Origin: Zygnema circumcarinatum SAG 698-1b
Lineage: Eukaryota; Plantae; Zygnematophyceae
DNA length: 64,000 nucleotides
Assembly: GCA_037447605.1 (NCBI GenBank)
Contig: CM074815.1
Location: 868,001-932,000 of the forward strand
Direction: 5' to 3'
Positions within the stretch are counted from its first letter, which is position 1, and each line of letters begins with the position of its first letter. Both the position numbers and the translations under genes were made by a program. Shown here in pieces: positions 151 through 64,000 of the stretch. The notes beneath the pieces were generated by a model, which worked only from the letters and a program-made list of their open reading frames with translations, did no database searches and was not told where the DNA came from.

Positions 151-1131
151 TGTTAGTGTATAGTAGTTAGTCACTAGACAAGTTGTTGTTAGGTTATTGA
201 ACATTGTGCGTGTGTTGTGTCATGTGGCCCTTGGCGTGATGTGCGCCTAGACGTGTGAGTGATGCGGACTTTGGTCGATTGGAAGCTGGCCTTGTGGTGA
301 GAGGAGGTGGCGAGCGGCGTGACGATTCGAAATAATGACGTGTATGGGGCCAGCGGCCGCGGTCGCCGAATCAGAGATTGTGGCGTGACAGCATGAAACT
401 GCGCGCCAAATTTGAAAGTGGCGTGGCGGTATTGTACTTTAGATTGATTTGGACTTAGTATGAAGTGGCGTGGTGTCGGCGCGCGATTGAGAATTATGCG
501 AACTCGTAGGTATGCGGTGGCGTGAGATAGCGGTTGTGGCGTCATCTATCTTAGAGGCAAAAGGTGAGATCTCTGGCGCCAAGGCGTGGATTGAAACGAC
601 TGGTAGGATCCGTGAGCCAATTTGAATCGTGTGAGTCACGAGGATCGGCAGTATGAAGTTAAGATCGGGATAGGGCCCTTGCGGGCCGCTGATGCGATGT
701 TGTTAGCTCAAATAGCATGTTATCCCGTGTGTAGTGACATAGTACTTAAGAATTGTTTTGTTGTAGGCAAACAATTCATTGAGCCTGTAGTAGTCTGTTA
801 TCTTTGTTGGGTGTTGGAGCACTACACTTACTTTTCGTCTTTGTGAGGTAGTGGTACGTGAGATTACTGGGTGGCCGATTTGAGAGGGGTCCTCTCAATG
901 TATGAGTGAATTCACTATTAAGGAGTTTTAGAGCCTGGAGCTTTCTCCTATTCATTTCTCTCTGTTATTCCGCTGTGCATTATTTGCTGTGATTCACTCT
1001 GTGAGTAAAATGGGCTATGAGTGAATGTGAGAGATTTGAAGATGTCATCGTCGATTGGAACGCGAACTCCGATGGAGGGTGACCCGAATGGAGGAACGGA
1101 CGGCAGCAGTGGAGGAGTCCCTCCACCAACA
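151..1131 (+). repeat. Copia 5' LTR
   Basis: Starts TGTTAGTGTATAGTAGTTAG, ends CCACCAACA; homologous to 9879-10870. Confidence 0.93.
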
Positions 1132-2378
1132 AGTGGTATCAGAGCTCATGGAGACTCGGAGGACCACGTCAAGTTCAGCATTCCGGCCTTTGATGGGCAG
1201 GATTACAAGGCGTGGAGATGGAGGTTGGTTCCCCTGCTTGTTGGCAAGGGGTTGCTTGGGTATGTTGATGGCAGCATCAAGGCGCCGGAGTTACCGGTTG
1301 GAGCCTCAGCGGAGCAGCAGTCGGAGCACGACGTGGCGCTCGCACGATGGAAAGCCAAGGACAACAAGGCCCTGACGCAGATTGTAATGAGCGTAAGAGG
1401 AAGTCCGTCCTCTATGCTATATGATCTGAAAACCTCTCATGCCATGTGGAGATGCCTAGAGGAAATGTATGATGTAAAAGACAATGTGACGATCGTCAGT
1501 CTTTACACGCAGCTAGGCAAGATGAAGATGACTTCAGATGAGAAACTAGAAGCTTATATGGTCAGGTTTGATGCTCTGATGGAGAGGTTCATAGCCCTTG
1601 GGAAACCATTAGAGGCAGACCATAAGATAAGCCAGTTTCTAGGGGGTTTGACCAGTAGATTCGATGTGGCAGTGGCGGCTTTGAGGACAGTCCTGACTAA
1701 TACCACGATGACTCTTGAGCAAGTCAAGCGTAGGATAAAGGAGGAGGACTCCATTCAGGATGTCGGCAGCCCTGAGGAGAAAGTGCTTGCGTTGCACACT
1801 CGACCGAATCGAAGAGGAGGCGCCCCGAAGTCAGCCCGAGGAGAACGCTCGGCAATTACGTGTTACACGTGTGGCAAGACCGGCCACTACTCCAGCGATT
1901 GCTTCAAGAACAGAGGCAGCCAAGAGAAGGGAGGAAACGCGACTTCATCCGGCAAGAAGGAGAAGAAGGCGTTCGGTGGCACTTGCTTCAAATGCAAGAA
2001 GAGAGGCCACAGGAGTTCAGACTACAAGGTAGCAGTTGAGAACAACCTCATGCTGGCGGAGAATACTGAGAATGCGTTTGTGGGAAGGATTCAGGAAGAG
2101 GATCCGAAGCGGCCGTGGCTGATTGATTTCGGCGCTTCTACGCATATGTGCGGAGACACATCGATGTTCTCCAAGCTCGATAACTTGGAGAAGACACGCT
2201 CAGTCCATTCAGCAACCGGTGAAGGAGTCACCGTGACGAGAGGTGGAGCCGTGAGGATGATACTCGGAGACGGCTCGGTCATCAATGAAGAAGACATACA
2301 AGAGAAGTTGTCAATTGGTGACGTTCTTCACACCCCTGGGCTAAAGCAGAATTTCATGTCTGTTAGCCAAGTGTGTAA
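1042..2378 (+). pseudogene. Copia gag plus aspartic protease region
   Basis: IPAFDGQDYKAWRW...GLLGYVDG N-terminus; CCHC knuckle CYTCGKTGHYSSDC; second knuckle CFKCKKRGHRSSDY (last C lost); protease motif WLIDFGASTHMC; ends at the N gap 2379-2388. Confidence 0.88.
1134..1145 (+). promoter_or_regulatory. Copia primer-binding site (initiator tRNA-Met)
   Basis: TGGTATCAGAGC 2 nt after the LTR end; canonical plant tRNAiMet PBS. Confidence 0.93.
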
Positions 2379-2388
2379 NNNNNNNNNN

Positions 2389-3116
2389 GTTACCTTCTTG
2401 CGACCAACTGTCCCCCCCTCCAGTGGGTAAGCTTTGCTTACCCAGCACTCAGAGGAGCCGCATACCGTGTGTATGAGGGCCTCTCTGATGAGATTGGGGA
2501 CGATTGGGATAAGTTCAGAGATGAACTTATCAAACACTTTGGGGCCTTGGATCCCGGCTTGGAGGCCCGGGATAAGTTTCAGAACATGGTCCAAACCGGC
2601 AGCGTCAAGCAGTTTCTGCGAGACCTGCGACAAGTGGTGCCCCAAATCACCACTCACAAGCCTGGACAGGCTGAGTTCTTTTTCCACTTCAGGAATGGCT
2701 TGAAGCCACACCTGAGGAAGCAGCTAAGAACTAACCCACGGACTCTGAAACCGTGGGACCCCGCTGACTCTGAGCTGTACTTTGATGCAGCCATTCAGTT
2801 GGACACCGCCCCTGCAGGCGATGCAGGCCCTTCCCGACCCCAGCAGAGGTCGGGCGACGTTACAGGGTCGTGGAAGGCGGGACCCTCAGCTCCTGCCAAA
2901 CTGGCAGGAAAGAACAAGCGGAAGCAGCCGGAAGTGGCTGCCCGCCCACCCACTGCACGGCCGCAGAAGTTGACTCCAGAGGAAATGGAGAAGATGCAGC
3001 GGGAGAACAAGTGTTTCCGCTGCCGCAAGGAGGGGCATAAGGCCCGGGATTGCCCTCTCAACACCAAGGACAAGAAGGGCAAGGGGCCGGAAAACCCCAA
3101 CCCACCAGCAGCTTAG
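2389..3116 (+). pseudogene. Chromovirus gag (retrotransposon gag domain plus CCHC knuckle), 5'-truncated by gap
   Basis: WDKFRDELIKHFG...QTGSVKQF...FRNGLKPHLR and CFRCRKEGHKARDC; stop at 3114-3116. Confidence 0.88.
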
Positions 3117-4950
3117 GGGTCGTTGCTGGTGGACATGCTAGGCTAGGGGGAGGGAATGGGGCTGCCATCAAGGATAAGAGACTATTGTTTCTTAGAACCT
3201 CGGACATTCTTAATTTGGTGGGCAGGACTTTGGGAGTGCAAGATCTTTTTGTGTTTGATGTACTCCCTTCTTCCATTTCTCTTTCCCCTGCCACTGTAGT
3301 GACTCCTCCTGGGTTTATGGATGTGGTGATGCATGGTCAATGGAATGTGTTTATCCTCAATGTCATGGGTAATGATGTCTTGGTGAATTGTGCCACGGAT
3401 GCCATGCATGTCATGCGGGACACATCCCATATCCTTGGGCTGCATGTGCTGATTCCTCAGCACTTGGCAGTTCGCACTTTTCCCAACGCCAACTGGCGGT
3501 TGGTGAAACAGTTGAGGAAAGGGCACCCGTTGGTGCAAGAGATGGAAGGATCCACCAGCTTGCTGGTTGGCTCACCCTACACATTGGTGTGGAGGACGGC
3601 TCGTCCTCAACCTTCGCATATAGTGCGATCTATGTTCCACCTTGCCCATCGTGCCATGACCTTCATCGGGTCAGCCAATGGCCACCCAGCAGTTCTACTG
3701 CTAGATACTGGGGCAGATGCTAACTTTGTTAGTTCTGCGTTCACCCAGAGATTTGGGTTGACCACAGATCCCCATTCAGAAAGTGTTACTTTCGGGGATG
3801 GACGCAAGGGCCAGATCTCTGGTAGCGTCACACTCAAGATCAAGCTCCAATCCTACTCCGGGGCAGTCAAGTGTCTTCTAACACAACTGGCCCCTGGTAC
3901 TGATGTTATTTTGGGGAGTGCTTGGTTAACCATGGTCAAAGCACAAATGGACTTTTCTGTCCCACATTGCATTCTGCACAGTGGTGACAGGCGGCTTACC
4001 CTGCACCCTGGCAGAGCCACATCCTCTGCTATCAAGCAGCCTGCTACTCCTTATCTGTGCTCAGCTATGCAATTGGCCAAAGCAGTTAAGGAAGGTTGCA
4101 CCTTGTTCATGGTGCATGTCATGGCAGCCACTGAGGATGTTCATGACGAAGATCAGGAATGGCAGATCACATCTACGGATGTGCTCTCGGCTGTTCCATC
4201 CCAGATCCAACCTCTGTTGGATGAATTCAGGGATGTCTTCCCTGATGACCTCCCAAGGGGGTTGCCCCCATCGAGAGGGGTGGGGCACACAATCCCTCTT
4301 GAGCCTGAGCAAAAGCCGCCTTGGCGGCCGATCTATCGGTTAAGTCCAAAGGAAACCGAGGAAATGCGTAAGCAGTTGACTACTTAACGGGACAAGGGCT
4401 GGATAGAGCCCAGCCAAAGCCCTTTTGGGGCGCCCATCTTGTTTGTCGGCAAGAAAGATGGCTTGTTGAGGATGTGCATTGATTATCGTGCACTCAACAA
4501 GATCACCGTAAAGAATCGATTTGCTTTACCACGTATCGATGATCTGTTGGATCGTCTTCACGGCGCCAAAGTGTTCACATCACTTGATCTTGCTCAGGGG
4601 TATCATCAGATCCGCGTCACGGAAGCTGATGTGCCAAAAACTGTGTTCCGGACGCCGATTGGTCATTTCCAATATAAGGTGTTGCCCTTTGGATTGACTA
4701 ATGCTCCGGCAACTTTCCAGGCTGTCATGAACGAGATGTTCATCGGCATGGACGAATTGGTTTTGGTTTACCTCGATGATATCCTTGTCTTCAGTAAGAC
4801 GGAGGAGGAACATCTTGAACACGTTCGAAAAGTGTTTGAGACCCTGAGGAAACACCAGTTTTATGCCAAGAGGAAGAAGTGTCACTTCATGCAACGTGAG
4901 TTGCTCTATCTTGGGCATATCTTGAATGATCAAGGCCTTCGGCCTGATCC
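3089..4950 (+). pseudogene. Chromovirus pol: unknown N-terminal domain, protease, reverse transcriptase
   Basis: [71 protein letters not shown]. In-frame TAA at 4385-4387. Confidence 0.9.
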
Positions 4951-6150
4951 TGCCAACTGCATCCCCTCACACCTCCTTTTCGGAAATGGGATAGTGTGGG
5001 TATGGACTTGATCACAGATCTTCCTGTGACACCTCGGGGGCATGACTCCATCCTCGTCTTTGTCGATCGACTCAGCAAGATGGTGCATTTTGCACCAACT
5101 ACTAAGACAGCTGGGGCCGACGAGATTGCACGGTTGTATGTTGACAAAGTGTGGAGCCAGCATGGTCTTCAGTCAGAAATTGTGTCTGACCGTGATCCAC
5201 GATTCACCGGCCATTTCTGGACGGAAGTGCTCAAAATCGTTGGGACCAAGCAGGCGTTGAGTACAGCTTTCCACCCGCAAACCGATGGCCAGACGGAACG
5301 GGTGAACAGGATCCTGGAGGATTACCTCCGGCATTATGTGGGACCTACCCCGGATGGGTGGGACGAACTGCTCCCAGTGGCAGAGTACGCCATCAATAAT
5401 GCTTTCCAGGAGTCCATTGGTACCACCCCTTTCTTCTTGAACTTTGGCCAGCATCCTCTAAATCCCCTGCAACCAAGGGATCAGCCCCCTGATCCGTGGA
5501 ACATGGGCGTCCACAGAACCCCCGATCCTTGGAAGCTGAGAGGAACTGATGGGACTCAACCTCCCGCAGTCAGATCTTTTGTCCGGCTAATGTCTGAGGC
5601 GCTGCAGAGGGCACGGCAGACCCTGCTAGCGGCCCAGTCGCGACAAAAGGCCTATGCTGACCGTCACCGTACCCAACTCACCTTCCGTGAGGGCGATGAG
5701 GTGTTGCTAAGTACGGCGAACTTGAGACTCAAAGCTTATGGCGGAACACGTAAGCTGTGGCCCCGTTTCATAGGACCTTTTAAGGTCGTGAAGCGAATCA
5801 ATGATGTCGCTTACAGGTTGGATTTACCATCCCACGTGAAGGTGCATCCGGTCTTTCATGTGGGCTTGCTAAAGGTCTACCGTAGCGATGGGAGGATCCA
5901 GCCACCTCCCCCACCAGTGGAGCTTGAGGGTGAACTTGAGTATGAAGTTGAAACCATTCAAGCCCACCGTCTTGTGAGAAAGGGTCGATCTTCCCGTCAC
6001 GAATACCTCGTGAAATGGTTGGGCTATGGGGTTGAACATAGCACATGGGAAGCCGAGGGCAACTTAACCAATTGCCAGGAGCTCATCAACTTGTACCGGG
6101 AGGCTTATGTCACAGGAGAGGCCGGAGCGCAGGGCGCACGGGGTTCCTGA
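4951..6150 (+). pseudogene. Chromovirus integrase core plus C-terminal chromodomain
   Basis: [43 protein letters not shown], then chromodomain EYEVETI...YLVKWLGYGVEHSTWEAEGNL. Confidence 0.92.
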
Positions 6151-6304
6151 GCCGCCCCCGCAACTCGAAAGGGACTTGACCGATTATCGCCGAGCTCTCC
6201 TTGCTATCACGTAGAGTTCGACGCGTGCCGTTGAAACTACGAGCTGCCTTTACTACCCCACACACGTGAACGAGGGCGTTCACATCCTCACAGGGGGGGA
6301 GTAA

Positions 6305-6720
6305 TGTAGCGAAACGCTACAGTCACCCACGGGAGGTGTACTTAGGGCGCGCTCCGTCCTAGTACTCTCACCCCGGGCGCGGGCCGAGTGGCCAAGGCGT
6401 CGGGGACCACCTAGGACCGGGAAGGGTCCTGGGATCGAACCTTGCGAAGGTTGCAAGGGTTCGATGNNNNNNNNNNGCATTCGTACGTTGTACACCTCTG
6501 ACCCATTCGAGTCAGAGAGGAACACGTGGCGGTCTGCCACTGGACAGCCTTGCTTCCAATCCTCCATGCTGGTAGGAGGTTCAACGGGGGAAGCGTAAAG
6601 GGGCGAGGGTGACTGTCGTCACCCAACCAACGTACCGGCATTCGGTTGCACCCCCGCTCGGGGCTGCGCCACCCTCTGAAGTTCTTGCTCTCTCTCTCTC
6701 TCTCTCTCCGGCCCTCTCTC
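6305..6720 (+). repeat. Chromovirus 3' LTR (gapped; right end uncertain)
   Basis: TGTAGC start 3 nt after the PPT; N gap at 6467-6476; no clear terminal CA before Copia coding resumes. Confidence 0.6.
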
Positions 6721-8364
6721 GCTGAACTCGGAGTGCTGGTGTGTGATTCCGCGCAGACTGAAGAGGCGTTTTTCAGTTGTTACAATGAGAGAGGAGGGCT
6801 GTATTTTCTTGATTACAAGAGGGAGAATTATGAGCATGCCAATGCAATCTCAGAGAATGCCGTAGATGTATGGCATAGAAGACTTGGTCACTTACACCAT
6901 AGAGGAATGCAGTAGTTGGCTGAGAAGGGGTTAGTCCGTGGGCTAGACCCGGGTGTAGTGGAGAAGGAGCTTGGGTTGTGCCAGGAGTGTGTGGAGGGCA
7001 AGGCGCACAAGAGACCATTCGTGAGGAGTGGAGACGGGTCCTATCGAGCGCGAGAGAAGTTGGAATTGGTACATTCTGACTTGTGTGGCCCAGTTACACC
7101 GGCGACCAACGGCGGAGCACGTTACTTCGTCACGTTCCTCGACGATTACTCGAGGAAGATTTGGATTACGCTCCTCAAGGACAAGTCGGAGGCTTTCGGA
7201 GCCTTTCGAGATTGGCTGAACCAGGCGGAGACAAAATCAGGACAGAAGCTGAAGGCTTTGCGCTCAGACAATGGCGGCGAATTCAAATCGAAGGAGTTCG
7301 CAGGGTTCCTGAAGAACCGCGGTATAAGGCATGAATTCTCTGCCCCCTATTCCCCTCAGAGCAATGGAGCAGCTGAGCGAGTGAATCGGACATTGGGGGA
7401 CATGGCTCGGACCATGTTGATTGATTCCCCCTTTCCAGCTTCTTTTTGGGGAGAAGCGGTTTCTACTGCTGCGTACATTAGAAACAGGTGTCCGTCTTCT
7501 GTTCTGAAAGACCAGGTCCCTGAGCAGATGTGGAGTGGGAGGAAGCCCACAGTTTCCCACCTGAGGACCTTTGGCGCGCGATGCTGGGCTGCACTGCCCA
7601 AGGCGCGACAGAAGAAGAAATTCGACCCTCGAGCGGTGGAGGGTTATGTTCTCGGCTATAACACCAACAGCCGCACGTATAGGGTGTGGAACCCTCGACT
7701 GCAGGAAGTCCTGAGCACGAGGGACATTACAGTTGATGAGGGAAGTGCTGTTGAACGTGTTGCAGACTCTCAGATTTTTCCTCCAGTGAAAGCGGATTTC
7801 AAGATCGTGTATGAGGAGGGAGAGACAAGTGGAGAGCGTGATGTCACTGTGCAGGATGCCAGCACATCACAGAGCGAAGGAGCCGAGCTAGCAGCTGCGT
7901 CAAGCCAGCCTGCTGAAGTTGGAGAGTCGCCAGAAGAGGCGCATGCGGAGGGGCCGCAAAATTCGACGGAGACGATTCCACTGCACTCTCAGTCCAGTGG
8001 AGAAGAGGAGAACTCCGTGGAGACGGTGCCGCTGCACACGCAAGAGTCTGAGGACCTTGAAGCGGCCGAGAGAGAGGCTATGTTAGCTAACATGCCTCCA
8101 GGTTTTGTACCCGGACTCTACTTCTATCCGAGAGGACGAAGCGCGAAGGAGATTCGGAAGAGCAGTCGGGACAGGAGGCGACCAGATCGGTATTCGCCTG
8201 AGAACAACCTCATCCAAGAAAGAGTGCCTTCAGATTCAGCTGACCTCGTGGGAGTTGCCCATTGCTTTATGATCACGCGAACCACGCACCTTGGAGGAAG
8301 CCGCATCTACCTGAAAGTCGACATGGCGACAAATGGCGGTGGGCGCATCGATGTCGTTTTGTGA
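6721..8364 (+). pseudogene. Copia gag-pre-integrase and integrase
   Basis: GLYFL, WHRRLGH, CQECVEGK, LELVHSDLCGP, ALRSDNGGEF, PQSNGAAERVNRTL, KKFDPRA. TAG at 6913-6915 interrupts the frame. Confidence 0.92.
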
Positions 8365-8399
8365 CAGCCTTGATGTAGAACGCGACGCGGAGGTGTTCG

Positions 8400-9860
8400 A
8401 GGAGCTTCTCAAGGGAGGCAGCTATTGGTCGCAAAATGGGTCTTCGCAAAGTCGCGAGGAAGTAATTTTAAGCGGGATGATACAAGTTAGCGCGCTTAGT
8501 GGCAAAGGGATACGCCCAGAAGTATGGAGTTGACTACGTGGAGACTTTCGCTCCAGTGGTAAAGTTCAACTCCTTGAGAGCCTTGATTTCCATCGCAGCG
8601 GCTGAAGGAATGCATGTCCATCAGCTGGACATCAAGACGGCATTCCTGTACGGAGATCTAACGGAAGAGATCTATATGGAGCAGCCGGAGGGGAAGGTGG
8701 TCCCAGGAAAGGAACACCTAGTCTGTCGACTAGTGAAGAGCCTATATGGTTTGAAGCAGGCGCCCAGAGTGTGGTACGAGAAGATAGATGATCTTCTGAG
8801 GAGGAATGGTTTCGACCGATTCGAAACAGATCATTCCGTGTACCGTCAAGGAGAGGGGGCGGACATCATGTTCGTCGGGATCTACGTTGATGATCTCATA
8901 ATGGTGAGCCTCTCGCTTGAAAGAATCAGTTCCTTGAAAGAGTTGCTTCAAGCAAATTTCAAGATGTCAGATTTGGGGGAGGCGCAGTATCTGCTTGGGA
9001 TGCAGCTGAAGAGGGGGCAAGATGGCAGCTTATTCTTGTGTCAGAAGAAGTATGCATCGGATGTTCTTGCCCGGTTCCACATGGAAGATTCTAGGCCGTG
9101 CTCCAGCCCGATGGAGATAGGCGCTAGATTGTCGAAGGAGATGTCACCTTCGAGTGCAGCAGAGGCACAGAAGATGTTCGGTGTGCCTTACAGGTCTGCA
9201 ATTGGGAGTCTGATGTACCTGATGATTGGAACGCGTCCGGATCTGGCGAAAGCAGTGAGCTCGGCCAGCCGATTCATGGAGAATCCGGGCCTCGAGCATT
9301 GGGAGGCCGTAAAAAGGATATTCAGATATGTGAGAGGGACGCTTGATTATGGGATCAGGTATGAGAGGGGGCCAACCAGAGTGATTGGCTATACAGACTC
9401 AGATTGGGGAGGAGATGTCGATACGTCACGCTCGACTTCAGGTTTCATTTACCTGTATGGAGGTGGAGCGATTTCGTGGAGCTCCAAGTTGCAGGACTCG
9501 GTAGCGTTATCGAGTACAGAGGGCGAGTACATGGGTGCTTGTCATGCTGCAAAGGAGGGCGTATGGTTCCAGCAGTTCTTTGATGAATGCAAGAGAGAAC
9601 AACGCCCGATTACCTTGTTCACCGATAATCAATCATCGATTGCCCTGGTGGGAAACCCGGTGTTTCACAAGCGGACCAAGCACATCAGAGTGCAGTACCA
9701 TTATGTACGGGAGTTGGTCGAGGAGGGTTTGATCGATGTGAAGTTCGTAGGNNNNNNNNNNACGAAGGAGCAAGCCGCCGATATGCTGACGAAAGGAGTT
9801 AGCGGAGAAACCCTGCTGGTGAATGGCAGGTTGGTTGGGCTGGGGCCCATGCAAAACTAA
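8400..9860 (+). pseudogene. Copia reverse transcriptase and RNase H
   Basis: YGVDYVETFAPV, VHQLDIKTAFLYG, SLYGLKQAPR, GIYVDDLI, GYTDSDWGGD, FTDNQSS, RTKHIRVQYH, QAADMLTK. Confidence 0.93.
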
Positions 9861-32097: not shown

Positions 32098-32566
32098 GGG
32101 ATGAGTTAGGCTGCTCTGAACCCTTTTATGCTCCTCTCAGCTTCTAAGGAAACAGCTCGCACGTTCTGTGGCTTGGATGTAAGGCAGCTGAAGGAAATGT
32201 TGTCCACCGACTCAAGCTGCGTAGCCATGTAACAAGGCGTTGCTACAACAAATAAGATAACCAAATGTGTAGTATCTTAATACGGAGATTGTTCCCACTC
32301 AAGTTTAGCTCTTTAGGGTAATAGAACGAAAGAAATAGACGGAGGTATGGTAGGACGTGTAGGACTTGTGAAAGCTTCCCTATGCTGAACATGGCAGCGC
32401 AGCGGTGCAGGCCTCCATAGGGCAATAGTTTTTAAGTGACGTAATTTCCCAAGCCACGCCCCGCCACCCCCAATGCATAGCATCTCGAATATCGGACCCA
32501 TGCTTTCTTCTTCTTCTTGTTCAGTGAGGCGGCCGTTGGTTGCCTTGCCTGCTTACCTTCCAAAGC

Positions 32567-32648
32567 GGTTTGCGATCTGTGGTTTGCGGTTTGCAGTTTG
32601 CGGTTTGCAGTTTGTGGTTTGCAGTCTTTGGTTTGCAGTTTGCGGTTT
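32567..32648. repeat. Degenerate 7-bp tandem repeat (R-GTTTGY), about 12 units
   Basis: GGTTTGC/AGTTTGC/GGTTTGT units; homologous tract at ~35700-35795. Confidence 0.8.
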
Positions 32649-35570: not shown

Positions 35571-35699
35571 CGTTTCCCCCTCGTTTCCTCAGCACTGGCC
35601 GAGCCCGTCCGCCCGCTCGCCCCCTTCGTGAGCCGCCGCCCGCGACCCGCAGCCCCGCTTTCGCGCACGACCTCCACTTTGCGCTTTCTGGTTCAAGAT

Positions 35700-35795
35700 T
35701 TGCGGTTCGCGGTTCGCGGTTTGTGGTTTGTGGTTTGTGGTTTGTGGTTTGTGGTTTGGGGTTTGCGTTTTATGGTTTGTGGTTTTTGGTTTTCC
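35700..35795. repeat. 7-bp tandem repeat (GGTTTGT)n upstream of inhibitor copy 2
   Basis: GGTTCGC x2, then GGTTTGT x5 and degenerate units. Confidence 0.8.
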
Positions 35796-36787
35796 GTTTT
35801 CTGGAGGGATGATGCTAGTGACGTACTTCAATATTTAAACAGCGTAAGTAAATAGCCGCAGGGCCGCTATACCCCATTTGTACCTGAACTCCTCCCTCCG
35901 CGTGTCCGCCACGGCATCCGTCCTTCGCGTGCGTGGTGGACTTGAGTGTCGACCAACCTCGGGACGCCACGTGTCACTAATGTACACGTGGCGAAATGGC
36001 TGTTTGATTGTTTCGATTTGGAGCGGGGCAGCGGAAGGTCTCTTCGCCTTCCAAGGTTTGACTCTGAAAGTGGAGGAAAGAGGGAGGAGGAGAGAGAAGC
36101 TAGGAGGGTCCCAGGGGCAGCGCTCTGCTCTTGTGTTCCATTATTGTATTGTATTTCTGTAAGGATTGAAAAAAGCTTGATTCGCAAAGCATCAGGTATA
36201 CTATCTCCTTGTTTCTTTCGCGTGAAGGTGGAATGCTTGAAACACTTAAAAGCAGTCTGATCAAGCGGAAAGGAGAGCTGTGCAGAAAATTTCATTTTCG
36301 GTGACAGTCCGGTGTTTGATCATGTTTGTGTGTGAATACAATGTTTCTGTTTCAATTCTGCAAGACAGTTGTATTCGATCAGGAAAGTGAATGTTGGCTG
36401 AAAGTTTATGCCGCAGTTTCCTTATTCTTAAAACCAATCAGAGTGAGTAGAGTTGACTGGATTATTGAATGTAGTAAGGAATACCTTTAGCGTGTCTTTT
36501 CCTTTACCGTACAGTCTTCGGTTATCATGGACCTTAGCGTCTGCACATGTTATATTCAGAGGACAGAGCAATTATCTTTATCCCCGTCCCAGACTTTTAA
36601 CTAGGTGTTGGAAGAAAACCAGGACGTCACAAAAATATTGTGTATATCAATACTTCTGCTGTGAAGCAGAATAAAAGCAACCATTATTGGAAGCAGGAAA
36701 ACCTTTCGCAGTTGACGGTGCAGTTTCAAAAGCTTCGTGTGTGAGCATCTTGTATTGACATGCTTTGTGGCCCTTTCAGTGTCAGAC

Positions 36788-44671: not shown

Positions 44672-45667
44672 TGTAGCGTAACGGAGCTGCGTTCGACGGA
44701 TCCGCGTCCGTTCAGTTGTACTTGACATATTCATATTCGGTGTCACGGACCGGCATAATCCAGGAGTTGCCGACGGAAAATGCGAGAAGGCGGCGCCATG
44801 TGTTGGCGGCCCACGGCACGGCACACCATCCAGCTAGGCGCACTCGGAAGCGCCGCAACATGCCGCCGATTGTCAGCAGTTGACCTATCAGAAGGCCCCA
44901 CGTAGGTAGTCAGGCCTCTTAGTGGGCAGTTGGCCAATCAGGGACTGTCACTGCTAAGGCTCAAGATCTATTGTCAGAGTGTTAAGTAGATGGGATGTCA
45001 GTGATGCTTGTTTGTCTTTTAGTGCTGGGCTTAGTATTTGTATTTGCTGTGTGGTTTGTTGTCTTGTTCTTCTCTTCTTCCTCTTCAGTTCCAGCAACAG
45101 ATGCTAAGTGTGAGAGAGAGAGAGAGTTCCATGCCATAGATAGAGAGAGAGAGAGAGAAGAGTCTTCTTGCTGATAGCATTTGGACGTCCCATTCAGCCC
45201 AGCTAGACAAAAGATTTTAGTGAGAAGATCCTTTCATTGTAATGACTATCCCCAGCCAACCGCTGGCTGGGGTGACTTTCCAAAATACGACCTTTATCTA
45301 AGTTGAGTCCTGTCTTCCCTTTGTTGTCACTATGCCAAGCTACCATCTTGTGAAATCCTGCCTTATGCTCCGCCCAATGACCAATGATAACTAGAAGCCT
45401 AGCTAAGAGAATAGCCGAGGAGAGGACAGGGGAGGAGAGCCCCCAAGGAAGGGCTCTTTGCGCATCGGGTCCAGCCGCCGGAGGGAACATCTTCAGGATC
45501 CCTACGTCTTCCGCTGCGCGTACCTCTGAATCCCCCGGATCCTGGCTCTATGCTGCAGGCAGACCCACAGCACCAACCCAACCCCTCATTAGTTTCAGCA
45601 CGGACGCGCGAGTGGCCGTACAGCACCTGCAAATAGCTCAGCAGTCTCCTCTTAACCCCACTTATCT
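44672..45667 (+). repeat. Gypsy B 5' LTR
   Basis: Its 3' part is nearly identical to 50351-50702 and its 5' part to the reverse complement of 11350-11523. Confidence 0.88.
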
Positions 45668-48600
45668 TGGTATCAGAGCAGAAGGTTTTGCAGATCCACG
45701 TACCTTGATACGTGAGGCTGCCGATCCTGTGACCCGTGTCACAACTGCCATGGATGAAGAGCTGCAACAAGAGGGACAAGCATATCTTCATGAGTATTCA
45801 GAGGAAGACCTGGGACCTCAAGAAGAACAAGCGATCGGAAATCCAAGGACGGATTCAGACTCAGAGGAAGAAGCAGTCAGAGAGAGACTGAAGATGGGCA
45901 TCACCGAAGAGAACCCTTATCCCAGTTTGGCTTACCTTGAGCAGATCGAGTCGATTGAAGAGCTGCAGCGACTCCATCTAGGCAGTGATGGCCATAAACT
46001 TCGCTGGCGATATGCACGCAGGATGATCAAGCTTGCAGCCTGCCCAGTCGCTGTCACGGCCGCAAATGCCGTGAAGAGAGGAGTGCCGTTCGAACCTGAG
46101 GTCCCCCCCGCGGCCCACCAGGGACACAACCCACGGGATCTCAGTCGGATAACTACTGCACCAGGAGTNNNNNNNNNNAGGCCTTGTTAGAAAGGGCAGA
46201 GCGAATTCAAAAGGATCAAGAGAGAGGCAACCGACATGTACGACCACATTACATGAATGCTACAGATCCACGACAAGATCGACTCTACCAGCAGTTCTTA
46301 AAGACACAGAATCAGCAGTTGTATGATCCCTACGCTACATCTTCTAGGAACAAGCCGTCTTTCTCCGGCATCCCTGCTCAGGACGTCCGGGCAGCCCTTG
46401 TGGTGCAGCCTCTGGCTATAGCCAGCGCGACCAAGCCCCTTCCCCTTTCCCCATACCCTCATGATCCTGCGCATCCCATCGAGCCGTCGGTGAATCCTCA
46501 CATACCCGATGTTTCTCGTCCAGGATATCGGGGTCCTTACTCCGATCGAACACCCGAAGAGAGAGAAGCCGCCAGAGCCGATTTGCGCCGTCGGATGACA
46601 GAGGCAGGGGTTCCAGAGGGCGTTTGTCTTGCCTGCGGCCTGAATCATAATCCGCGGCTGCGTTGTGGACCATGGACCTGCACCTTCTGCCAGATCACGG
46701 GACATGATGCCCGTGTATGCATGCGGAGACTCTCAAGTGAGAAGGCCCGAAAGGGGAAAGAGGCAGCAGCAGGGAGCTCACCTGCAGAGATCACCTTCAT
46801 GGATATGCTCCCGACTACTCCCACACTACCGAGAACTCCGGCTCCCTTTCGCCCGCCTCCACCTCCTTCACCCACTTACACCATCCTGCAACGACCGCCT
46901 ATGCCACCTGCACCCCATGGGAGTGCCCTTCCTGACAAGCGCAATTGGGTCCTGAGCACTGATCCTGCTCCCCCGCTCAGCACCGCCCGGATCCGCAGCA
47001 GTGAGGCTCGCTTGGTCCCAAACCCCCCATCACTTCTGGAGGGGTGCCCAAGCCCGATGGCCGAAATCCAGCTCCCACTGCGCAGGCTCCCTATAAACCA
47101 GGAGTGAGTCTCATTCACATCTCCTGCCATTCCTCCCTGCACATGTCAACGGCGCCAGCTCCTCGGGCACGGCTCCACCGGTCGCCACCCCTGTCCGGAG
47201 AACTTCAGTCCTCCCTCCTTCCACGGGTCATCCCTTGGGATCCATGCCTGAGGAGGAAACTGACGATCTCAATGAGGATGAGCCGACAGCGGCGCAGCCA
47301 GAGCCGACAACACCGACGACAGAAGAAATGCATGTCAACCCGCTCCATCGCCCTTGACACCGGACTCTGCCCCAAGCGCCGATGGTGGACCCTGCCCCAC
47401 AGACGGTGTCCCTGATTGACGCATTGGTTCATCGCTCATGGGAGCAACTGAGTGGGCGTACTGCCTCACCAGTTCGTGAGTCGTGGGATTTTCTGGGGGC
47501 CGGTGAGTCGTAAGCTGGCCGCCTGCAGAGGGCCACCTCCAGCCTCACATGGTCCCCATGGCACCTCCTCCGGACATCCCCTCGCCGGCAGATATCCACC
47601 ACATGGCCACGGCGCCTCTTCCAGACCCAGTTCGCTCTCCCCGCCATCCTCCTCGCCAGATTCATGTTCTCCCTCTGATCCCAACACCCAACGTGCGAAT
47701 CATTGTCAATGTATGGCTAAACAGGTAACACGGCAGAGCCATGATCGACACGGGAGGGCTGTGCGACGCGGTCCTGTCCGGCCGGTCGTGGAGGGCTGCG
47801 GGTTAGGGCTGGACAAGACGCCGAGCCCATTCCAGTGGCGGTTGAAGGGGAGCCTGTCATGAAGGATTGGGCGGTGCCAGCGTGAGTCATAGCCTCGCGG
47901 ATGGGAGCCACGAGTGAGATGCGGTCATCACAGCGAGGCGTGTTGTGTATGGTGGGCTCAGATTGGCTCATTGCGATGGGAGCACGAATCGACTTTGCTA
48001 CGTGTCAACTGCACTTATCTACTGGCGGGACAGACTGCTCCTTCCCCATCATCCTCGAGTCCCTTGCCACCTCCGCTCCCAAACGCCACGCACGCGGCAG
48101 GTCTCCTCCGAGATCACCATGTACCATGCTGTGGCGGCCCCCATCTTCCTATGGATCGGCCAGTGTGATCTGAATGACAGAGCTCCCCCTTCATGCTCCC
48201 CGAATCCAGCCCTGTCTGCGCCGGCAGAGGGAACTTTTGGTGCCGGTGATGGCTGCACCCGGCTTCCCGGCCCACGAGCCAGCAGAGTGGACCACTGGAG
48301 CACGGGGGGGGTCATGGATGAGCCGGCGGTGCTCTTCAACCCAATCAAGCATTCTCAACTACGCCAAGTGCTGCGCCGAAATCACCTAGTTTTCGCACGA
48401 CATTCACTCGACATCGGCAAGACCCACCTGATTGAGCACCACATCGATACGGGGATGCACCTCCGTGATGAGCCATGACTCCCTGCCGGTTCCGCCACTC
48501 GCGGCCGATGTCGACGACGGGTCGGTGGGGAGCGTGAAGCCGGCTTGGTGGAAGCACCGAGAAGGGCCTGAGCAGGCCCGGCCGTCTGCCCCAAAGCCAG

Positions 48601-50350
48601 ATGGCACACTCCGCTTCTGTGGAGACTCTCGGAAACTGAATGCCATAACGATGGGATCCTCCTCGTTCCCGGATATGGGACCTGATTCTGCAGCGTGTCC
48701 CCTAGAGACCGATGGTGCGCCTCGTGCTGGGATTCCTGTCGCAGGTCCCCTGCGGCAGCGAGGATCGCTGCGGGCAGGGCTTGGTGAGCTCGCGCTTCAT
48801 CCCAGTGGACGTTCCTTCCCTTTCAGACTGGGGATTGCAGCCAGCAGCTCACAGGCGCCTGGCCAACCAGGTGTTCGGCCCCTGTCGTGCCTTCTGCGAG
48901 CCTTACGTGGATGATGCTTCGATCCACAGCAAGGACTGGTCCTCCCACCTGCAACACATTGACCAAGTCCTTCAACAGCTCATCAGTGCGCGTCTGAAGA
49001 TTGCACCCAAGAAGTGCAAATGGGGCCACCAGGAGATCACTCATCTCGGGCACCGCCTCGGTATCAATGGCCTGAAACCATCACTCGACAAGATTGAAGC
49101 GATTGACCTTATGCCGATTCCACAGAACCTCACTCAGCTCAAGTCTTTCTTGGGACTCACCTCATTCTATCGCCAATTCATCAAGGGCTATGCCCTTATC
49201 GCGCGTCCCCTACATGCCTTGGAGAAGCACGGAGTCCACTACGAATGGAGCCGAGCGCAGGATCTGGCCTTCCGGCGCTCAAGAGTGCCTGCTCAGGGCT
49301 ACCTTCCTGCTGGGTTGGCTCGGTCCCACCTGCCCACCATCATTGGCGCTCAGACCCAAACGGGCTTAGGCGGTCACAACCAAGCCTTCTCGGATGGGGA
49401 ACACCCGGTCAGTTATGCTAGCAGGGTTTGTTCAGAAACCGAGACCAAGTACAGCCCTACTGAGGGTGAGGCCGCGGCTATCCTCTGGGCACTCGAGAAG
49501 TTCAAGCTCTTCACGGCCTACCAGCCCATTATCATCAGGACTGACCACATGCCCCTCACTTGGCTACACATTATGGCTACCCTACGACCTAAGTTTGCAC
49601 GATGGGTGATGAAGTTGGAGGAGTATAATGTACTTAAGGTCACTCACCGTCCCGGCNNNNNNNNNNACCTGGCTGCACATCATGGCTACCCTACGCCCTA
49701 AGTTTGCACGATGGGTGATGAAGTTGGAGGAGTATAATGTACTTAAGGTCACTCACCGTCCCGGCTGCAGTCACGGCAATGCTGACGGCCTCAGTCGCAA
49801 TCCTTCGGCCCCCCTCCTCTGTCACGATCCGGCCGTCCCTGAACCCATCCCTCCACCCACTCTCTTGAACCCTGAGCATCTTCCCATTGAGATTTTTATT
49901 GCCGATCAAGACTTGCATGATGTCATATTCGCAGATGGGCTGATCGATATTCCGGCCACGGCCACCACCCTCCATCGCTGGCAGGACCCTGACTTCACCC
50001 ACGGCCACCCCCATGCGGATCCGTGGGAACTCCTCATGGATGACGATGGCGAAGCTCCCTTTCTTCCTCCCCATTTCCCCAGCGCCAATGACGTCCATTC
50101 AGAAACCTCCCTTCTGCGCTACGTCATGACCCGCACATTGCCCCCTTTTATCACGGACACCGAGAGGTCTCGGCTGCTCCGCCGCGCTCGGAACTTCTCT
50201 GTTGATGATGAAGGACAGATTCTCTACCTCCCCTCCGGCCTTCCTGTTCCTTTCCCCAACGAGCGCATGGAAATTCTGGACGTCGCACACGATTCCCAGC
50301 CCGGCGGATTCCACCTTGGCCAGAAGAAGATGGTCGCCCTNNNNNNNNNN

Positions 50351-50710
50351 CCCTTTGTTGTCACTATGCCAAGCTACCATCTTGTGAAATCCTGCCTTAT
50401 GCTCCGCCCAATGACCAATGATAACTAGAAGCCTAGCTAAGAGAATAGCCAAGGAGAGGACAGGGGAGGAGAGCCCCCAAGGAAGGGCTCTTTGCGCATC
50501 GGGTCCAGCCGCCGGAGGGAACATCTTCAGGATCCCTACGTCTTCTGCTGCGCGTACCTCTGAATCCCCCGGATCCTGGCTCTATGCTGCAGGCAGACCC
50601 ACAGAACCAACCCAACCCCTCATTAGTTTCAGCACGGACGCGCGAGTGGCCGTACAGCACCTGCAAATAGCTCAGCAGTCTCCTCTTAACCCCACTTATC
50701 TTGTGCTACA
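50351..50710 (+). repeat. Gypsy B 3' LTR (3' portion, after gap)
   Basis: Matches ~45317-45667 and ends TGTGCTACA. Confidence 0.88.
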
Positions 50711-50791: not shown

Positions 50792-51385
50792 TTTAGGGTT
50801 TAGGGTTTGGAATTTGTAATTTACACAGCTTTTTGGGCTAGATACACACCCTAAAAAACCTTAAAAGCCCCACGATAAAATCTGACAGGCAAAAAATTGT
50901 GTACAGTAGTTATCAAAAAAAAATATAAGGTGTGTAACTAGACCCTAAGTAGGGTTTACCGCACGTGTTTATGGGTGGAGAACGGTGACACGACGTTACG
51001 ATTCTTGGGAAGATCTCGGCGGCAGGAATTTTTCCTTTTCGGGCATGACGTCACTGCACTTTTAAGAAACCGAGTTTTTTTAATTTTCGTACTTTTCGGT
51101 AATGGTTTTTTTTCTTTTTTGTTTGGCTGAAACTGGCCAATGGCCAGTGGACAATGGGGAGAAAATTTCCGATTTTAAATTTCCGAGTTCCTACCTTGGG
51201 GCTTGGCGAGATGAAAATTGAAAAATTGGAAGTTGGAAGTTTTGTGCTATAGCTATTGACGGAGCCAGTTTCAGCCGCCGTTAAATTGTGAACACATGTG
51301 ACATGTGACCTGACCGTCATTTGTGACGCTGTTTTTGTATGTGACCGCAGTCGGCAGTTCAGTAACATGGAACGGGTTAGGGTTT
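50792..51385. promoter_or_regulatory. Telo-box cluster and site-II motif upstream of SF3B1
   Basis: TAGGGTTT at 50794, 50801, 50950 and 51378; TGGGCT at 50834. Confidence 0.55.
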
Positions 51386-57600: not shown

Positions 57601-58332
57601 GCTCTTAGCAGGTTTCTTAGTTGTTGCATGGTCTAGATATGCAAGCAGTCATCGTATTGGAAAGGTTGATGTTCTTGTTGTTACCTTTTCTGCTCAGTCA
57701 TTAGTCAACTACTAGGCAGAGTATGCCTTTCAAATCAATAGCCATCACCTTGAACGTAGACCTTTCTCGCTCTGTGAGCTTATCCCTCTGTAACCTACTG
57801 TTGATCTGCTTTCATTTGCAGATATCGCGTTCCTGAGCTGAATGTCCAAAACGGAGTCCTGAAGTCCCTCTCCTTCCTTTTCGAGTACATTGGAGAAATG
57901 GGTAAAGACTACATCTACGCTGTCACTCCTCTCTTAGAAGACGCCCTTATGGACAGAGACCTGGTTCATCGCCAAACCGCCGCTTCAGCAGTGAAGCATA
58001 TGGCATTGGGAGTTGCAGGGTTGGGCTGTGAAGACGCTCTCGTGCATCTCATGAACTATGTATGGCCCAACATATTTGAGACCTCTCCCCATGTGATCAA
58101 TGCTGTCACGGAGGCTATTGAAGGTATGCGTGTCGCTTTGGGCCCCGCAGCAGTGCTCAGCTATTGCCTGCAGGGGCTTTTTCACCCGGCGAGGAAAGTT
58201 CGAGAGGTGTATTGGAAGATCTACAATTCGCTGTACATAGGTGCCCAGGACGGGCTGATTGCCTCGTATCCTAACTTGGAAGATGAGGCCAGCAACACGT
58301 ACAGCCGGCCTGAGCTCTCTATGTTTGTCTGA
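51623..58332 (+). CDS. SF3B1: Splicing factor 3B subunit 1 (U2 snRNP), 11 exons
   Basis: TP-rich N-terminus (RWDETP repeats), [35 protein letters not shown] repeats ([25 protein letters not shown]), ends [10 protein letters not shown]. All inferred introns are GT-AG. Confidence 0.98.
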
Positions 58333-58862
58333 CCTGGATAAGGTGCGAGAGAGAGGGGGGGGAAAGTGAGGGGGAGCGAAGGGAGAGCTTTTAGTTGAAT
58401 ATGACTTGCTCCAGTTGGAGCTTAGTGTGTGTGGGTGGGCTGAGGAAGGGGAGCTTCTAATGCACTCGAACAAGGTTGTGGCTCTCTATTTGCTTGTAGA
58501 CTGCAGAGATGGGCAATGAAAGAATGGTGCTTGTGGAGGCTTTCTGTTGACTGTGATGTGAGTGATTCCCTATGTGTGGGAAACTGCGGGGTAGAAAAGG
58601 AGTTTTCTCATGAGTATGCAATGTCCAAGGAGTGAATGCTGCTTAGTTGAACTAATCGTAACCGTTTAAAAAAGCACAATTTTAATCGGTTAATAATTGT
58701 GTTTGTCAACTTCCTCATGTTCGGTTGTGACCACTTCTGATTGGCAGTCTCTCACTCTTTCGCTCTCTGTGTGTCTGTCCCCTCCCTCTCTCGGCGTATA
58801 GAGCTACTCCCATAAACTGTACGCGCAAAGGGGCTTCTGACTTCTGACATAAAAAAAAAATC

Positions 58863-59019
58863 TAAACCTAAACCTAAACCTAAACATACCTAAAAACCCT
58901 AAAAACCCTAAAAACCCTAAAAACCCTAAAAACCCTAAAAACCCTAAAAAACCCTAAAAACCCTAAAAACCCTAAAAACCCTAAAAAACCCTAAAAACCC
59001 TAAAAACCCTAAAAACCCT
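58863..59019 (-). repeat. Interstitial telomere-like array: (TTTTTAGGG)14 plus a (TTTAGG)3-4 leader
   Basis: Plus strand shows 14 units of A5-6CCCT at 58892-59019 (12 with A5, 2 with A6), preceded by TAAACC x3; flanked by a direct repeat CTGACTTCTGACAT-A9/10-TC. Confidence 0.9.
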
Positions 59020-60846
59020 CTGACTTCTGACATAAAAAAAAATCGATCAGGAATCGTTTTACATCGTCATAGCAGCTGAAAGTCACGTCTCTCCCTTCCC
59101 CTCCCCCCTCCTCTATCTCCTTCTTCCACCCACTCCGACCCCTTTTTATTCTTCTTACTTCTCGTTCCACTCTCGCTCTCTCTCACTCTCGTTTTCTTTT
59201 TGTCTCTCTATTTCTCACTCACTTCTTTCAACTTTTTTCTTGGGAAAAGGGATAGAAGATGAAACGTTTCTTAGACCATGGGTATTTGACTCACTTGCAA
59301 AATTTCACATGTGTGCTGACCTATGTATACTCCATAAATTCAATTCAGTTGAAGAATAGAATTCGATGAAGTGCTCCATCTTCCAAAAACATGTGTACAG
59401 ATGTGTATTGGAGTAATGAATGGCACCTTTCCTAGCGGCTTAGGTGAAGCATATTACATCCTTGGACTCAGACACAACATCGTGTCTATAAAACAATCAT
59501 CCAAGCGAGGTTTTGAAATTACCTTCTACGAAAAATGGGCAATGCAAAGTTACGAACCCTAAGGACGGTGATATCATACTCCAAAGCAAATATGAAAAAT
59601 AAACTTTACTTTCACTTTTAATTCCATTTGTCACCAAGGCTCGACCCAGGAGAAGGTAGGGAGGGGGTGGGGGGGGGGAGGGGGGAAGAAGACGAAAGGA
59701 TGGAGGGAGGGGCAGGGGAGGGGGTGGGGAGGCGGTCACTTCACCTCTATCGACTGCTCCACAGGCTTCTCCGGAACTTGAAGAAGTTGCTACTGACCAC
59801 GGGGCTTGCCCATCGCCACGTGGGCGGCTGTGAGGAGGAGTACCGTCCCAAAATGGAGGAAGGATAGGAGTTCTCGGAGCTACACTTGCGGCCTATCTGC
59901 ACTGCGGGTCACGGCTTGCAGCCTCTCTCTCTTCCTCCTCTCCACCTCCCTCTCTCTCTCTCTCTCTCTCTCTTCTGGCGCTCTCTCTCCCTCCCTCTCC
60001 CTCTTCGCTGTGCTGCTTTCGTGGCGCCGTCGGCACTTTTTGCTCCTTTTTTCCACGTCAACTGATTCGCGGCTGCTTTCAGAGTCACATCGCTCAGGCA
60101 AGAAGCAGCGTTCAGGTGACAGCTTTTGCTCCAATTTTGGGTTAAGTTTGGGTTAATTTTGTTACCTTTCATGTCGGTTCTTTATAGTCGTTTTTCTGCT
60201 TATGTACCTGTTTTGGATCTCTCCGTCGTCGTGATGTCAACAATATCTATTATTCTACGTTAGGGAGGCTACTTTGGAATGTGACATGCGAGACCTGAAA
60301 ACTCCATATGTCGATGCGTGTATGGTTTCAAGACATGACGTGGTCCATATGGAAGGTTGAATCTGTCAATTCAGGCCATGTTCCGATCACATAATCAATT
60401 TGTTCCACAAATTTGGTTTGACAAAAAGGCAAAATCAATCTCGAATCTCCGTCTGCTACATTTCGTAAACGCTCGTTTTAATGGAATTTGCTTGTTGAAC
60501 CCATTTCACTTCCCAGGGCCTCATTAGGGACTCTCCGCGCTTTCCTAACCACCTGCTTACCTAAAAGTTGCTGTGCAGCAGCACCTTCATGGGGCACCAT
60601 GATAATGGTCCACCTTGGCCTCTCCATGGGAGACATAGATGTCTGGCCTTCAGATATGAAGCACGAACTAAGGAGGAGGTTACACCTACGTGGACATGCT
60701 TTTGCTGAGGAATTTTCGAAGTATTGGTTCCGAACAGAGCATGCCTGTGCCTGGGAATGAATAGCCAATTGCTTTTGCAGAAATGCAGGGAGGGAGAGTC
60801 AGTTTGTTTTTTCAACTGAGGAAGAGGGTTGGCAGAGTGCCCTGAC

Positions 60847-61698
60847 TCAGACGAGGGCCAAGTTATAGACCTGCTCCATCAAATTCTGCGTCGCACTTTC
60901 TGTCGGGAGGCTCCGCAGAACCCCTGGGGTCCACTGCGTGATGATTCCGGCGCAAATTGCAAACCGCAAGGCCCTTTTCAACTGATCTTCATCTTCCAAA
61001 ATTTTAGGGTTAAGAGAGAGCTTTCGCAGAAACCCTGCAAAACAGAGAAATGGGGCGTGTCAATGCAAAAGGTCTTCAGTAAAAGTGAGTACAACCATGC
61101 AATAAGCGAAAACCACGAGCATCCCACAATAGGGTTAAAAACAACCTCCCTTTTCTAAACCCGGCAACAAGTCTGAGCATCCGCAGCTGTACCCACCTGC
61201 TATAAGTGCATCCCCTGAACCTGTCCGGTCACAGGAGTAGGCCGCTATAATAACATCCTCTGTACCACGAACAAGTCCGTCGAAGTTGTGAGCATAGTAA
61301 TGAACGCTCCAAGTCCCATTCGTGACCAGAAGAAGCTGCAGGTTTTCGGTAAGGATTGTTGAAACCTCCTCTCTCGAGTAATGGATCAGATTCCCCAACC
61401 CCCGCGGCTGTTCATTCGCCGCAGCACTGAGTTTAATGGCTTCTTTCCGGCGCTCAAAGTATGCTTCGTTGATTAAAAACTCCAACTCTACTCGAGACAC
61501 CTTCACAACATCTGCTTCCACCCAGACTGGAAGCAGAGCAGCCCAGGCTATTTCCACAGAACGCCATAGAGGGAAGGGGAGGTTCACATCCAACACAACA
61601 AGGGCCCCGCTATCCTTTGCGAGCTTTACTGCTGCAAGAGTGGCTGATCGAGAAGGCTCATTAAGGAGGCTAAGGGTGGTCACATGTAAGATGGTTGC
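60847..61698 (-). CDS. FLN1: Fructokinase-like 1 (pfkB family, plastid RNA polymerase-associated), last two exons 61698-61197 and 61034-60847; 5' part unresolved
   Basis: DVNLPFPLWRS, VKVSRVELEFLINEAYFERRK, LLVTNGT..HYY..FDG.V.GTEDV, CDRTGSGDA, LRFAICAGIITQW, LPTESATQNLMEQVY match recalled FLN1 motifs. Confidence 0.85.
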
Positions 61699-62464
61699 CT
61701 GCCACAAGCATGCAAACATGGAACTCAGAAGCAATCAGCCGCCCTTCCTTCTCAGAGTCAAGGGCAAACAGATACCTTTCCTACAACCGTCCGAGAGAAC
61801 GACTGTGGGTCGCAGCTTAGAAGCTCCGGCTTGTACTATGAACCCAGGGGGGACCCGATAAGAAGGGGATTTATCTATCTCGATCAGAAGGATTTTAGGG
61901 AGGCCACGAAGGCTTGACAAGCTCCATGGGAAGGCTCAGTCCACTCTAAAGAGATTTTTCAAAAGGCATACAAGCTCGTCTGAAGCGCAAAGGTTTTGGC
62001 TGCCTTTGTTTGGAAGACTGGTAAGGACGTTCATTACTTTCCGCATAAGTAAAGCATAAAAACATGAAGTTACATAAACATGGTGCATGCCTTACTTTTG
62101 CAGGTACAATACCCACTTGACACTGAGGAATTCAACATCGTGAATGATTCTAAGACTATTCCCGCCGCTTTCTTATAAAGAAATGAAAAGGAGATTTAGG
62201 TACAAAAGCGCAAGGAAAAGAGGAAAAAATTGTGAACACAGGAGCTCCAAAAATGCCCGATATTTGTTCCTTCTCAAACAGCCGAGCAACGTTCGCCGAA
62301 TCAGCTTGCATACAAGAACGTATGACTCTTTTGTCAAACTTCAGTTCCAGGGGTTTCAAATTCAACAGACTGCCTCTACCCGCATGTATTTCTGCTCACC
62401 TTATCATGCCAGATAAATTCTTCGATGAGCGCAAGAGAGACACAGGCGAGGGAGGGAGGGAGGG

Positions 62465-64000
<1,536 letters not shown>

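Follow-up and report, generated by a model that had tools for sequence, protein, structure and literature searches.

Background

The closest described counterparts of the locus reported here are the interstitial telomeric sequences of mammals, short pure arrays of telomere type lying in unique DNA, which provide a precedent for telomeric insertion at breaks (PMC2246262, PMC8537989, PMC7215372). Random filler and short overlaps occur at their junctions, a duplicated target is present in a minority of the loci, and the G-strand is joined to a 3' end of the break. In the primate, rodent and horse loci described by the Nergadze/Giulotto group, the telomere unit is proven, there are empty orthologous sites, nucleotides in register with the repeat are enriched and some flanks are derived from telomerase RNA. 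The horse loci provide the diagnostic features: in-register nucleotides at 77% of loci compared with an expectation of at most 25%, and occasional telomerase-RNA-derived flanks (PMC7215372). The locus described here resembles these insertions in its array, its type of junction and the attachment of its G-strand; it differs in that its 9-mer is only putatively telomeric, in that a single nucleotide is in register and in the 25-26-nt duplication that surrounds it.

Two other systems are relevant. When a break leaves complementary 3' protrusions, fill-in by CST-guided Pol alpha-primase and subsequent joining by NHEJ produce small tandem duplications (PMC8355091). Class 1 templated sequence insertion polymorphisms are foreign inserts flanked by a target-site duplication of more than 10 nt (PMC5110952).

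The T-rich telomere motifs of the green lineage (T4AG3 in Chlamydomonas and Klebsormidium, T6AG3 in Cestrum) follow a common TnAG3 formula (PMC6549138, PMC3622300). T5AG3 is a documented but minor slippage variant of a T4AG3 telomerase and accounts for 1.8% of the units in Chlamydomonas telomeres (PMC6549138). In contrast to these T-rich motifs, the product obtained by TRAP from the Zygnematophyceae tested (Zygnema circumcarinatum, Micrasterias and Mesotaenium) is the Arabidopsis-type T3AG3 (PMC3622300). T5AG3 as the main telomere unit of any organism was not found in the searchable literature.

Anatomy of the insert and its flanks

The window analysed here is a single stretch of 64,000 nucleotides of the Zygnema genome. 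It includes an insert of 157 nt (58863-59019), in which a 26-nt leader of TTTAGG type is followed by an array of 14 units, 12 of them T5AG3 and 2 of them T6AG3; the minus strand is the G-rich one. The features are as follows (coordinates, strand, description):

58836..58862, no strand assigned: target-site duplication, left copy, (T)CTGACTTCTGACAT-A10-TC; the window has just one other copy, and 0 are expected by chance
58863..58888, minus strand: leader or filler, read directly from the sequence as (TAAACC)x3 followed by TAAACATA on the plus strand; on the inserted G-strand these are 3'-terminal units of TTTAGG type
58889..59019, minus strand: 9-mer array (T5AG3 x12, T6AG3 x2), G-rich on this strand, defined by TRF and by reading unit by unit
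59020..59044, no strand assigned: target-site duplication, right copy, CTGACTTCTGACAT-A9-TC, which shares the T at 59019 with the array

The insert is bounded exactly by the two copies of the target, CTGACTTCTGACAT-A10-TC and CTGACTTCTGACAT-A9-TC, with no spare bases on either side. The sole difference between the 26-mer at 58837-58862 and the 25-mer at 59020-59044 is one A in the homopolymer (A10 compared with A9). Since both copies are preceded by a T (58836 and 59019), the duplication may be 1 nt longer (26/27 nt). The 25-mer has exactly two matches in the 64-kb window, compared with 0.00 expected from 100 shuffles. An initial annotation of this DNA had described both the array with its leader and an exact target duplication of about 25 bp; unit-by-unit reading, TRF and this count of matches bear out the two descriptions.

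On the plus strand, the array begins with one CC-TAAAAA unit and continues with units of the form CCC-T-A5/A6. The A-runs of all 14 units are 5,5,5,5,5,5,6,5,5,5,6,5,5,5, so that changes in the length of the T-run are the only kind of impurity, and no T4AG3 unit is present. For the pattern (CCCTAAAAA)2, no chance matches are expected. TRF describes the region 58889-59019 as an array of period 9 (14.3 copies, 96% matches, score 244) or, alternatively, of period 37 (5,5,5,6; 3.6 copies, 98% matches, score 255). The 37-nt higher-order period is based on the two T6 units, which are too few variants to carry weight, and is not statistically meaningful. A second small TRF array, AAACCT x4.7, is located at 58858-58885.

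The orientation is best seen on the minus strand. Here, read 5' to 3', the target ends with ...GTCAGA and is followed directly by the GGGTTTTTA repeats. At the far end of the tract, GGTATG, (TTTAGG)x3 and TTTA lead into the GA-T10-ATG... of the other copy of the target. At each junction, 1 nt can be assigned to either side.

Neither the leader nor the flanks have a further copy within the window, so that membership of the flanks in a mobile repeat has no support there. The junction between leader and array is likewise without a second copy, both in the window and in 21 metagenome loci fetched for comparison (see below). A Pol-theta-type origin for the leader, in which its core would be a templated filler copied from the flanks, was considered and rejected: the shared 5-mers, ACATA and TAAAC, are at chance level (P ~0.56).

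Insertion rather than growth in place

To place the duplication in context, flanks of 60 nt were compared for 14 of the window's tandem arrays, using a threshold of at least 8 nt for a direct repeat. Only the T5AG3 array is flanked by such a repeat; none of the other 13 arrays tested is (0/13). Together with the exact flanking of the insert by the duplication, this argues for an insertion and against growth in place. When the target is rebuilt without the insert and with one copy of the 25-mer, the result is plain sequence that includes no TnAG3 seed.

The alternative, that the array grew in place from a chance seed and carries an unrelated small flanking duplication, or that the locus is an assembly artefact, is very improbable. 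The window is indeed rich in long simple repeats, for example the (AG)n tract of at least 1.5 kb at 62469-64000, and the difference between A9 and A10 could be a homopolymer error. Growth in place is nevertheless difficult to reconcile with the exact fit of array and leader between the two 25-mers, with the lack of flanking repeats at the other arrays and with a single-copy target that reconstructs cleanly and contains nothing telomere-like from which an array could start.

We therefore consider the locus to be an insertion made during the repair of a break, whatever the enzyme, with a probability of about 85%. It is also well supported that this was a recent, one-off event which left a clean scar with both junctions preserved: the copies of the target differ in homopolymer length only and the array is 96-98% pure. 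The earlier proposal of a healed break is thus strengthened by the singular position of this array among the 14 tested. At least one telomere-like array in the genome has in all likelihood arrived by insertion, not by growth in place, and provides a clean natural case, from an alga closely related to the land plants, in which DNA of telomere type entered an internal break. The origin of the other telomere-like arrays becomes testable: how many of them carry duplications, and which enzyme made them.

Proposed break geometry and repair path

The copies of 25/26 nt, with nothing between them and the insert, are what the scar of a staggered break should look like. As the target is duplicated, both 3' ends of the break must have been kept. 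This geometry, a stagger of about 26 nt whose two 3' ends both survive, is known from repair and is also a possible substrate for telomerase, which adds to the support for a healed break.

The insertion, the duplication, the orientation and the 1-nt overlaps at the junctions are read directly from the sequence. The geometry of the break is inferred from the duplication; the repair pathway and the donor are likewise inferred. The spacer behind the SF3B1 gene (see below) would have suffered a break at an A-tract, in which the cuts in the two strands lay about 26 nt from each other and left complementary 3' protrusions; sequential nicking or a template switch would be equivalent to such a staggered cut. 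The T5AG3 tract would then have been attached to the 3' end of the minus strand (...GTCAGA followed by GGGTTTTTA...) and its far end joined to the 3' end of the plus strand (...A10-TC) through the 26 nt of irregular TTTAGG-type filler. Filling in both protrusions would produce the 25/26-nt duplication. The duplications obtained after CST-guided fill-in are similar in that both 3' protrusions are kept and filled in and the stretch between the nicks is duplicated. They differ in being plain and in having been observed in cultured mammalian cells (PMC8355091), whereas here 157 nt of repeat lie between the copies and the enzymes are putative.

Origin of the repeat tract

For the tract itself we slightly and tentatively favour, at somewhat less than even odds, DNA-templated copying of a T5AG3 minisatellite already present, as a filler acquired by synthesis-dependent or template-switch repair. 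The TRAP result for Zygnema telomerase, T3AG3 (PMC3622300), points in this direction, as do two unrelated metagenome contigs in which arrays of T3AG3 type include variant blocks of T5AG3 (L007 and L017, see below). The slightly better fit of period 37 than of period 9 (98% compared with 96%) would also be in keeping with a copied tract, though it depends on two T6 units only. Against copying, the sole impurities of the array are errors of telomerase type, and a 3' protrusion is the natural substrate of telomerase.

These last points suggest the other main candidate, in which a telomerase with a T5AG3-type template extended the 26-nt 3' protrusion of the minus strand, the C-strand was filled in and the tail was attached by error-prone end joining. 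We regard this as doubtful, if only a little more so than copying. Changes in the length of the T-run are the type of error that telomerases make, and the purity of the array, with extra Ts as its only errors, is compatible with telomerase without being proof of it; the same class of slippage is seen in Chlamydomonas telomeres (PMC6549138). The geometry deduced from the duplication would suit both telomerase and CST-Pol alpha, and the mammalian insertions cited above show that telomeric DNA can be added at breaks. Moreover, the 5' end of the G-strand abuts the 3' end of the target with 1 nt in register, the orientation that telomerase would give. This orientation is in keeping with the earlier proposal of telomerase action; other points are less favourable. 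[quoted passage not shown] In addition, the TRAP product of Zygnema is T3AG3 (PMC3622300), the array has no T4AG3 units, T5AG3 has not been described as a telomere motif in the searchable literature and the TTTAGG leader is not accounted for. The duplication had been presented as the known signature of telomerase in mammals, but target duplication accompanies just 3 of the 66 interstitial telomeric loci of the horse, or 5 of 66 if complex cases are included (PMC7215372).

The suggestion that the leader is derived from telomerase RNA also finds nothing in its favour. Rfam returns no match at the gathering threshold anywhere in the window and only chance-level hits at 58300-59700. The flank derived from telomerase RNA that characterizes the TERC-ITS subclass is not recognisable, the leader itself being a simple TTTAGG repeat. 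A search of the window for a telomerase RNA template, a check proposed in the initial annotation, gave a sole near match, CCCTAAAAAACC at 50849, which was rejected as it has no Rfam support. This T6AG3-like motif belongs to an inverted telomere-like pair at 50792-50866: (TTTAGGG)2.4 lies on the plus strand about 90 nt past a 3' LTR, and CCCTAAAAAACC follows some 40 nt further on in the opposite orientation. The first SF3B1-like exon ORFs lie approximately 2 kb downstream of the pair, which is without Rfam support for an RNA gene.

A further possibility is target-primed reverse transcription by a non-LTR enzyme, using as template either an RNA that contains the repeat, such as a T5AG3 array transcript or excised intron, or an element with extreme 5' truncation and a tail of T5AG3 type. 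This process classically keeps both 3' ends and leaves a long duplication, and the 25-26-nt duplication observed here, together with the A/T tract in the target, would fit it. We nevertheless judge it quite improbable. Neither end of the insert carries a poly(A) or an element body, neither of the inferred nick sites resembles the T-rich L1-type consensus, and in either orientation the A-tract lies at the end of the duplication opposite to the expected one. The junction between leader and array is unique in both the window and the 21 loci. The Pfam retroelement domains in the 18 ORFs of at least 200 aa are of LTR types only. Within the window, then, nothing supports the reading of the array as the tail of a retroelement. 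Class 1 templated insertions (PMC5110952) are similar in carrying a foreign insert between long target-site duplications; unlike them, the locus has no poly(A) tail, typical nick-site motif or identifiable source transcript.

T5AG3 as a possible telomere unit

The initial annotation had also raised the possibility that the array reveals an unusual telomere repeat for this organism. The locus does not show what the telomeres of this alga are made of, and the window provides no backing for a T5AG3 telomere. If T5AG3 were present at the chromosome ends, the motif would be new to the searchable literature and would contradict the published TRAP result for Zygnema.

A stronger version, which we consider unlikely, is that the telomerase of the alga really makes T5AG3 along with T4AG3 and routinely heals internal breaks with 3' protrusions. 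If so, this zygnematophyte lineage would have left the plant-type T3AG3 for a longer, T-rich unit. Routine healing by telomerase and C-strand fill-in would seed the telomere-like arrays of the genome, including those that fill introns, and the present locus would be the first clean and datable example of such healing with both junctions intact.

Comparison with metagenomes

JGI metagenomes were scanned with (CCCTAAAAA)4. The scan identified 21 loci of 4-6 units each, none with a clean duplication; these are unrelated to the Zygnema genome and are silent on that genome. A scan with 22 nt of the target gave no match. In two of the contigs (L017:2902-2958 and L007:1560-1595), T5AG3 units occur in blocks of four inside long, degenerate arrays of T3AG3 type, from which it follows that T5AG3 blocks can arise as variants in plant-type telomere-like arrays. 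Another, a marine metagenome contig (L001:1-110, Ga0115012_10251239), has about 110 nt of CCCTAAAAA units at its start, oriented as at a chromosome end, and could be the T5AG3 telomere of an unknown eukaryote.

Genomic context

Two genes flank the insertion (coordinates, strand, description):

57898..58332, plus strand: last coding exon of SF3B1 with its stop codon, identified as an ORF with E 6e-71 to human SF3B1 (chain 5ife_C, residues 1161-1301 of 1304)
61135..61734, minus strand: exon of a convergent pfkB-family sugar kinase gene (PF00294, E 5.5e-05, below the Pfam cut-off; 30-52% identity to PfkB proteins)

SF3B1 was identified exon by exon and its name rests on the match of the last exon; further SF3B1-like exon ORFs are located upstream. 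A word search with the pfkB exon retrieved only distant PfkB proteins (26-52% identity), and an exact look-up of five ORFs of the window in a protein collection gave no match. The insert starts 505 nt downstream of the SF3B1 stop codon, in the 3' UTR or in the intergenic spacer that separates SF3B1 from the convergent pfkB kinase gene. It is non-coding in effect in either case, with no coding consequence. No function is evident for a single scar in a non-coding spacer.

The window contains several other repeated elements. The (AG)n microsatellite at 62469-64000 (at least 766 units, 98% pure) runs off the end of the window just beyond the pfkB gene and is unusually long for a dinucleotide repeat. 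On the plus strand, the region 1021-9860 looks like a nest of LTR retrotransposons: the outer ORFs are of Copia type (gag and beta-barrel at 1021-2430, integrase at 6916-8364 and RVT_2 at 8499-9860) and are interrupted by gag, protease and integrase-chromodomain ORFs of Gypsy/chromovirus type (2469-6150). A second Gypsy-type element at 45317-50700 (plus strand) has LTRs of about 350 nt (45317-45665 and 50351-50700) that are 99% identical, with RT-RNase H ORFs between them, and is probably a recent insertion. Finally, two arrays of a GGTTTGY 7-mer, of 12-13 units each, are present in similar positions at 32565-32648 and 35699-35804, approximately 3 kb apart.
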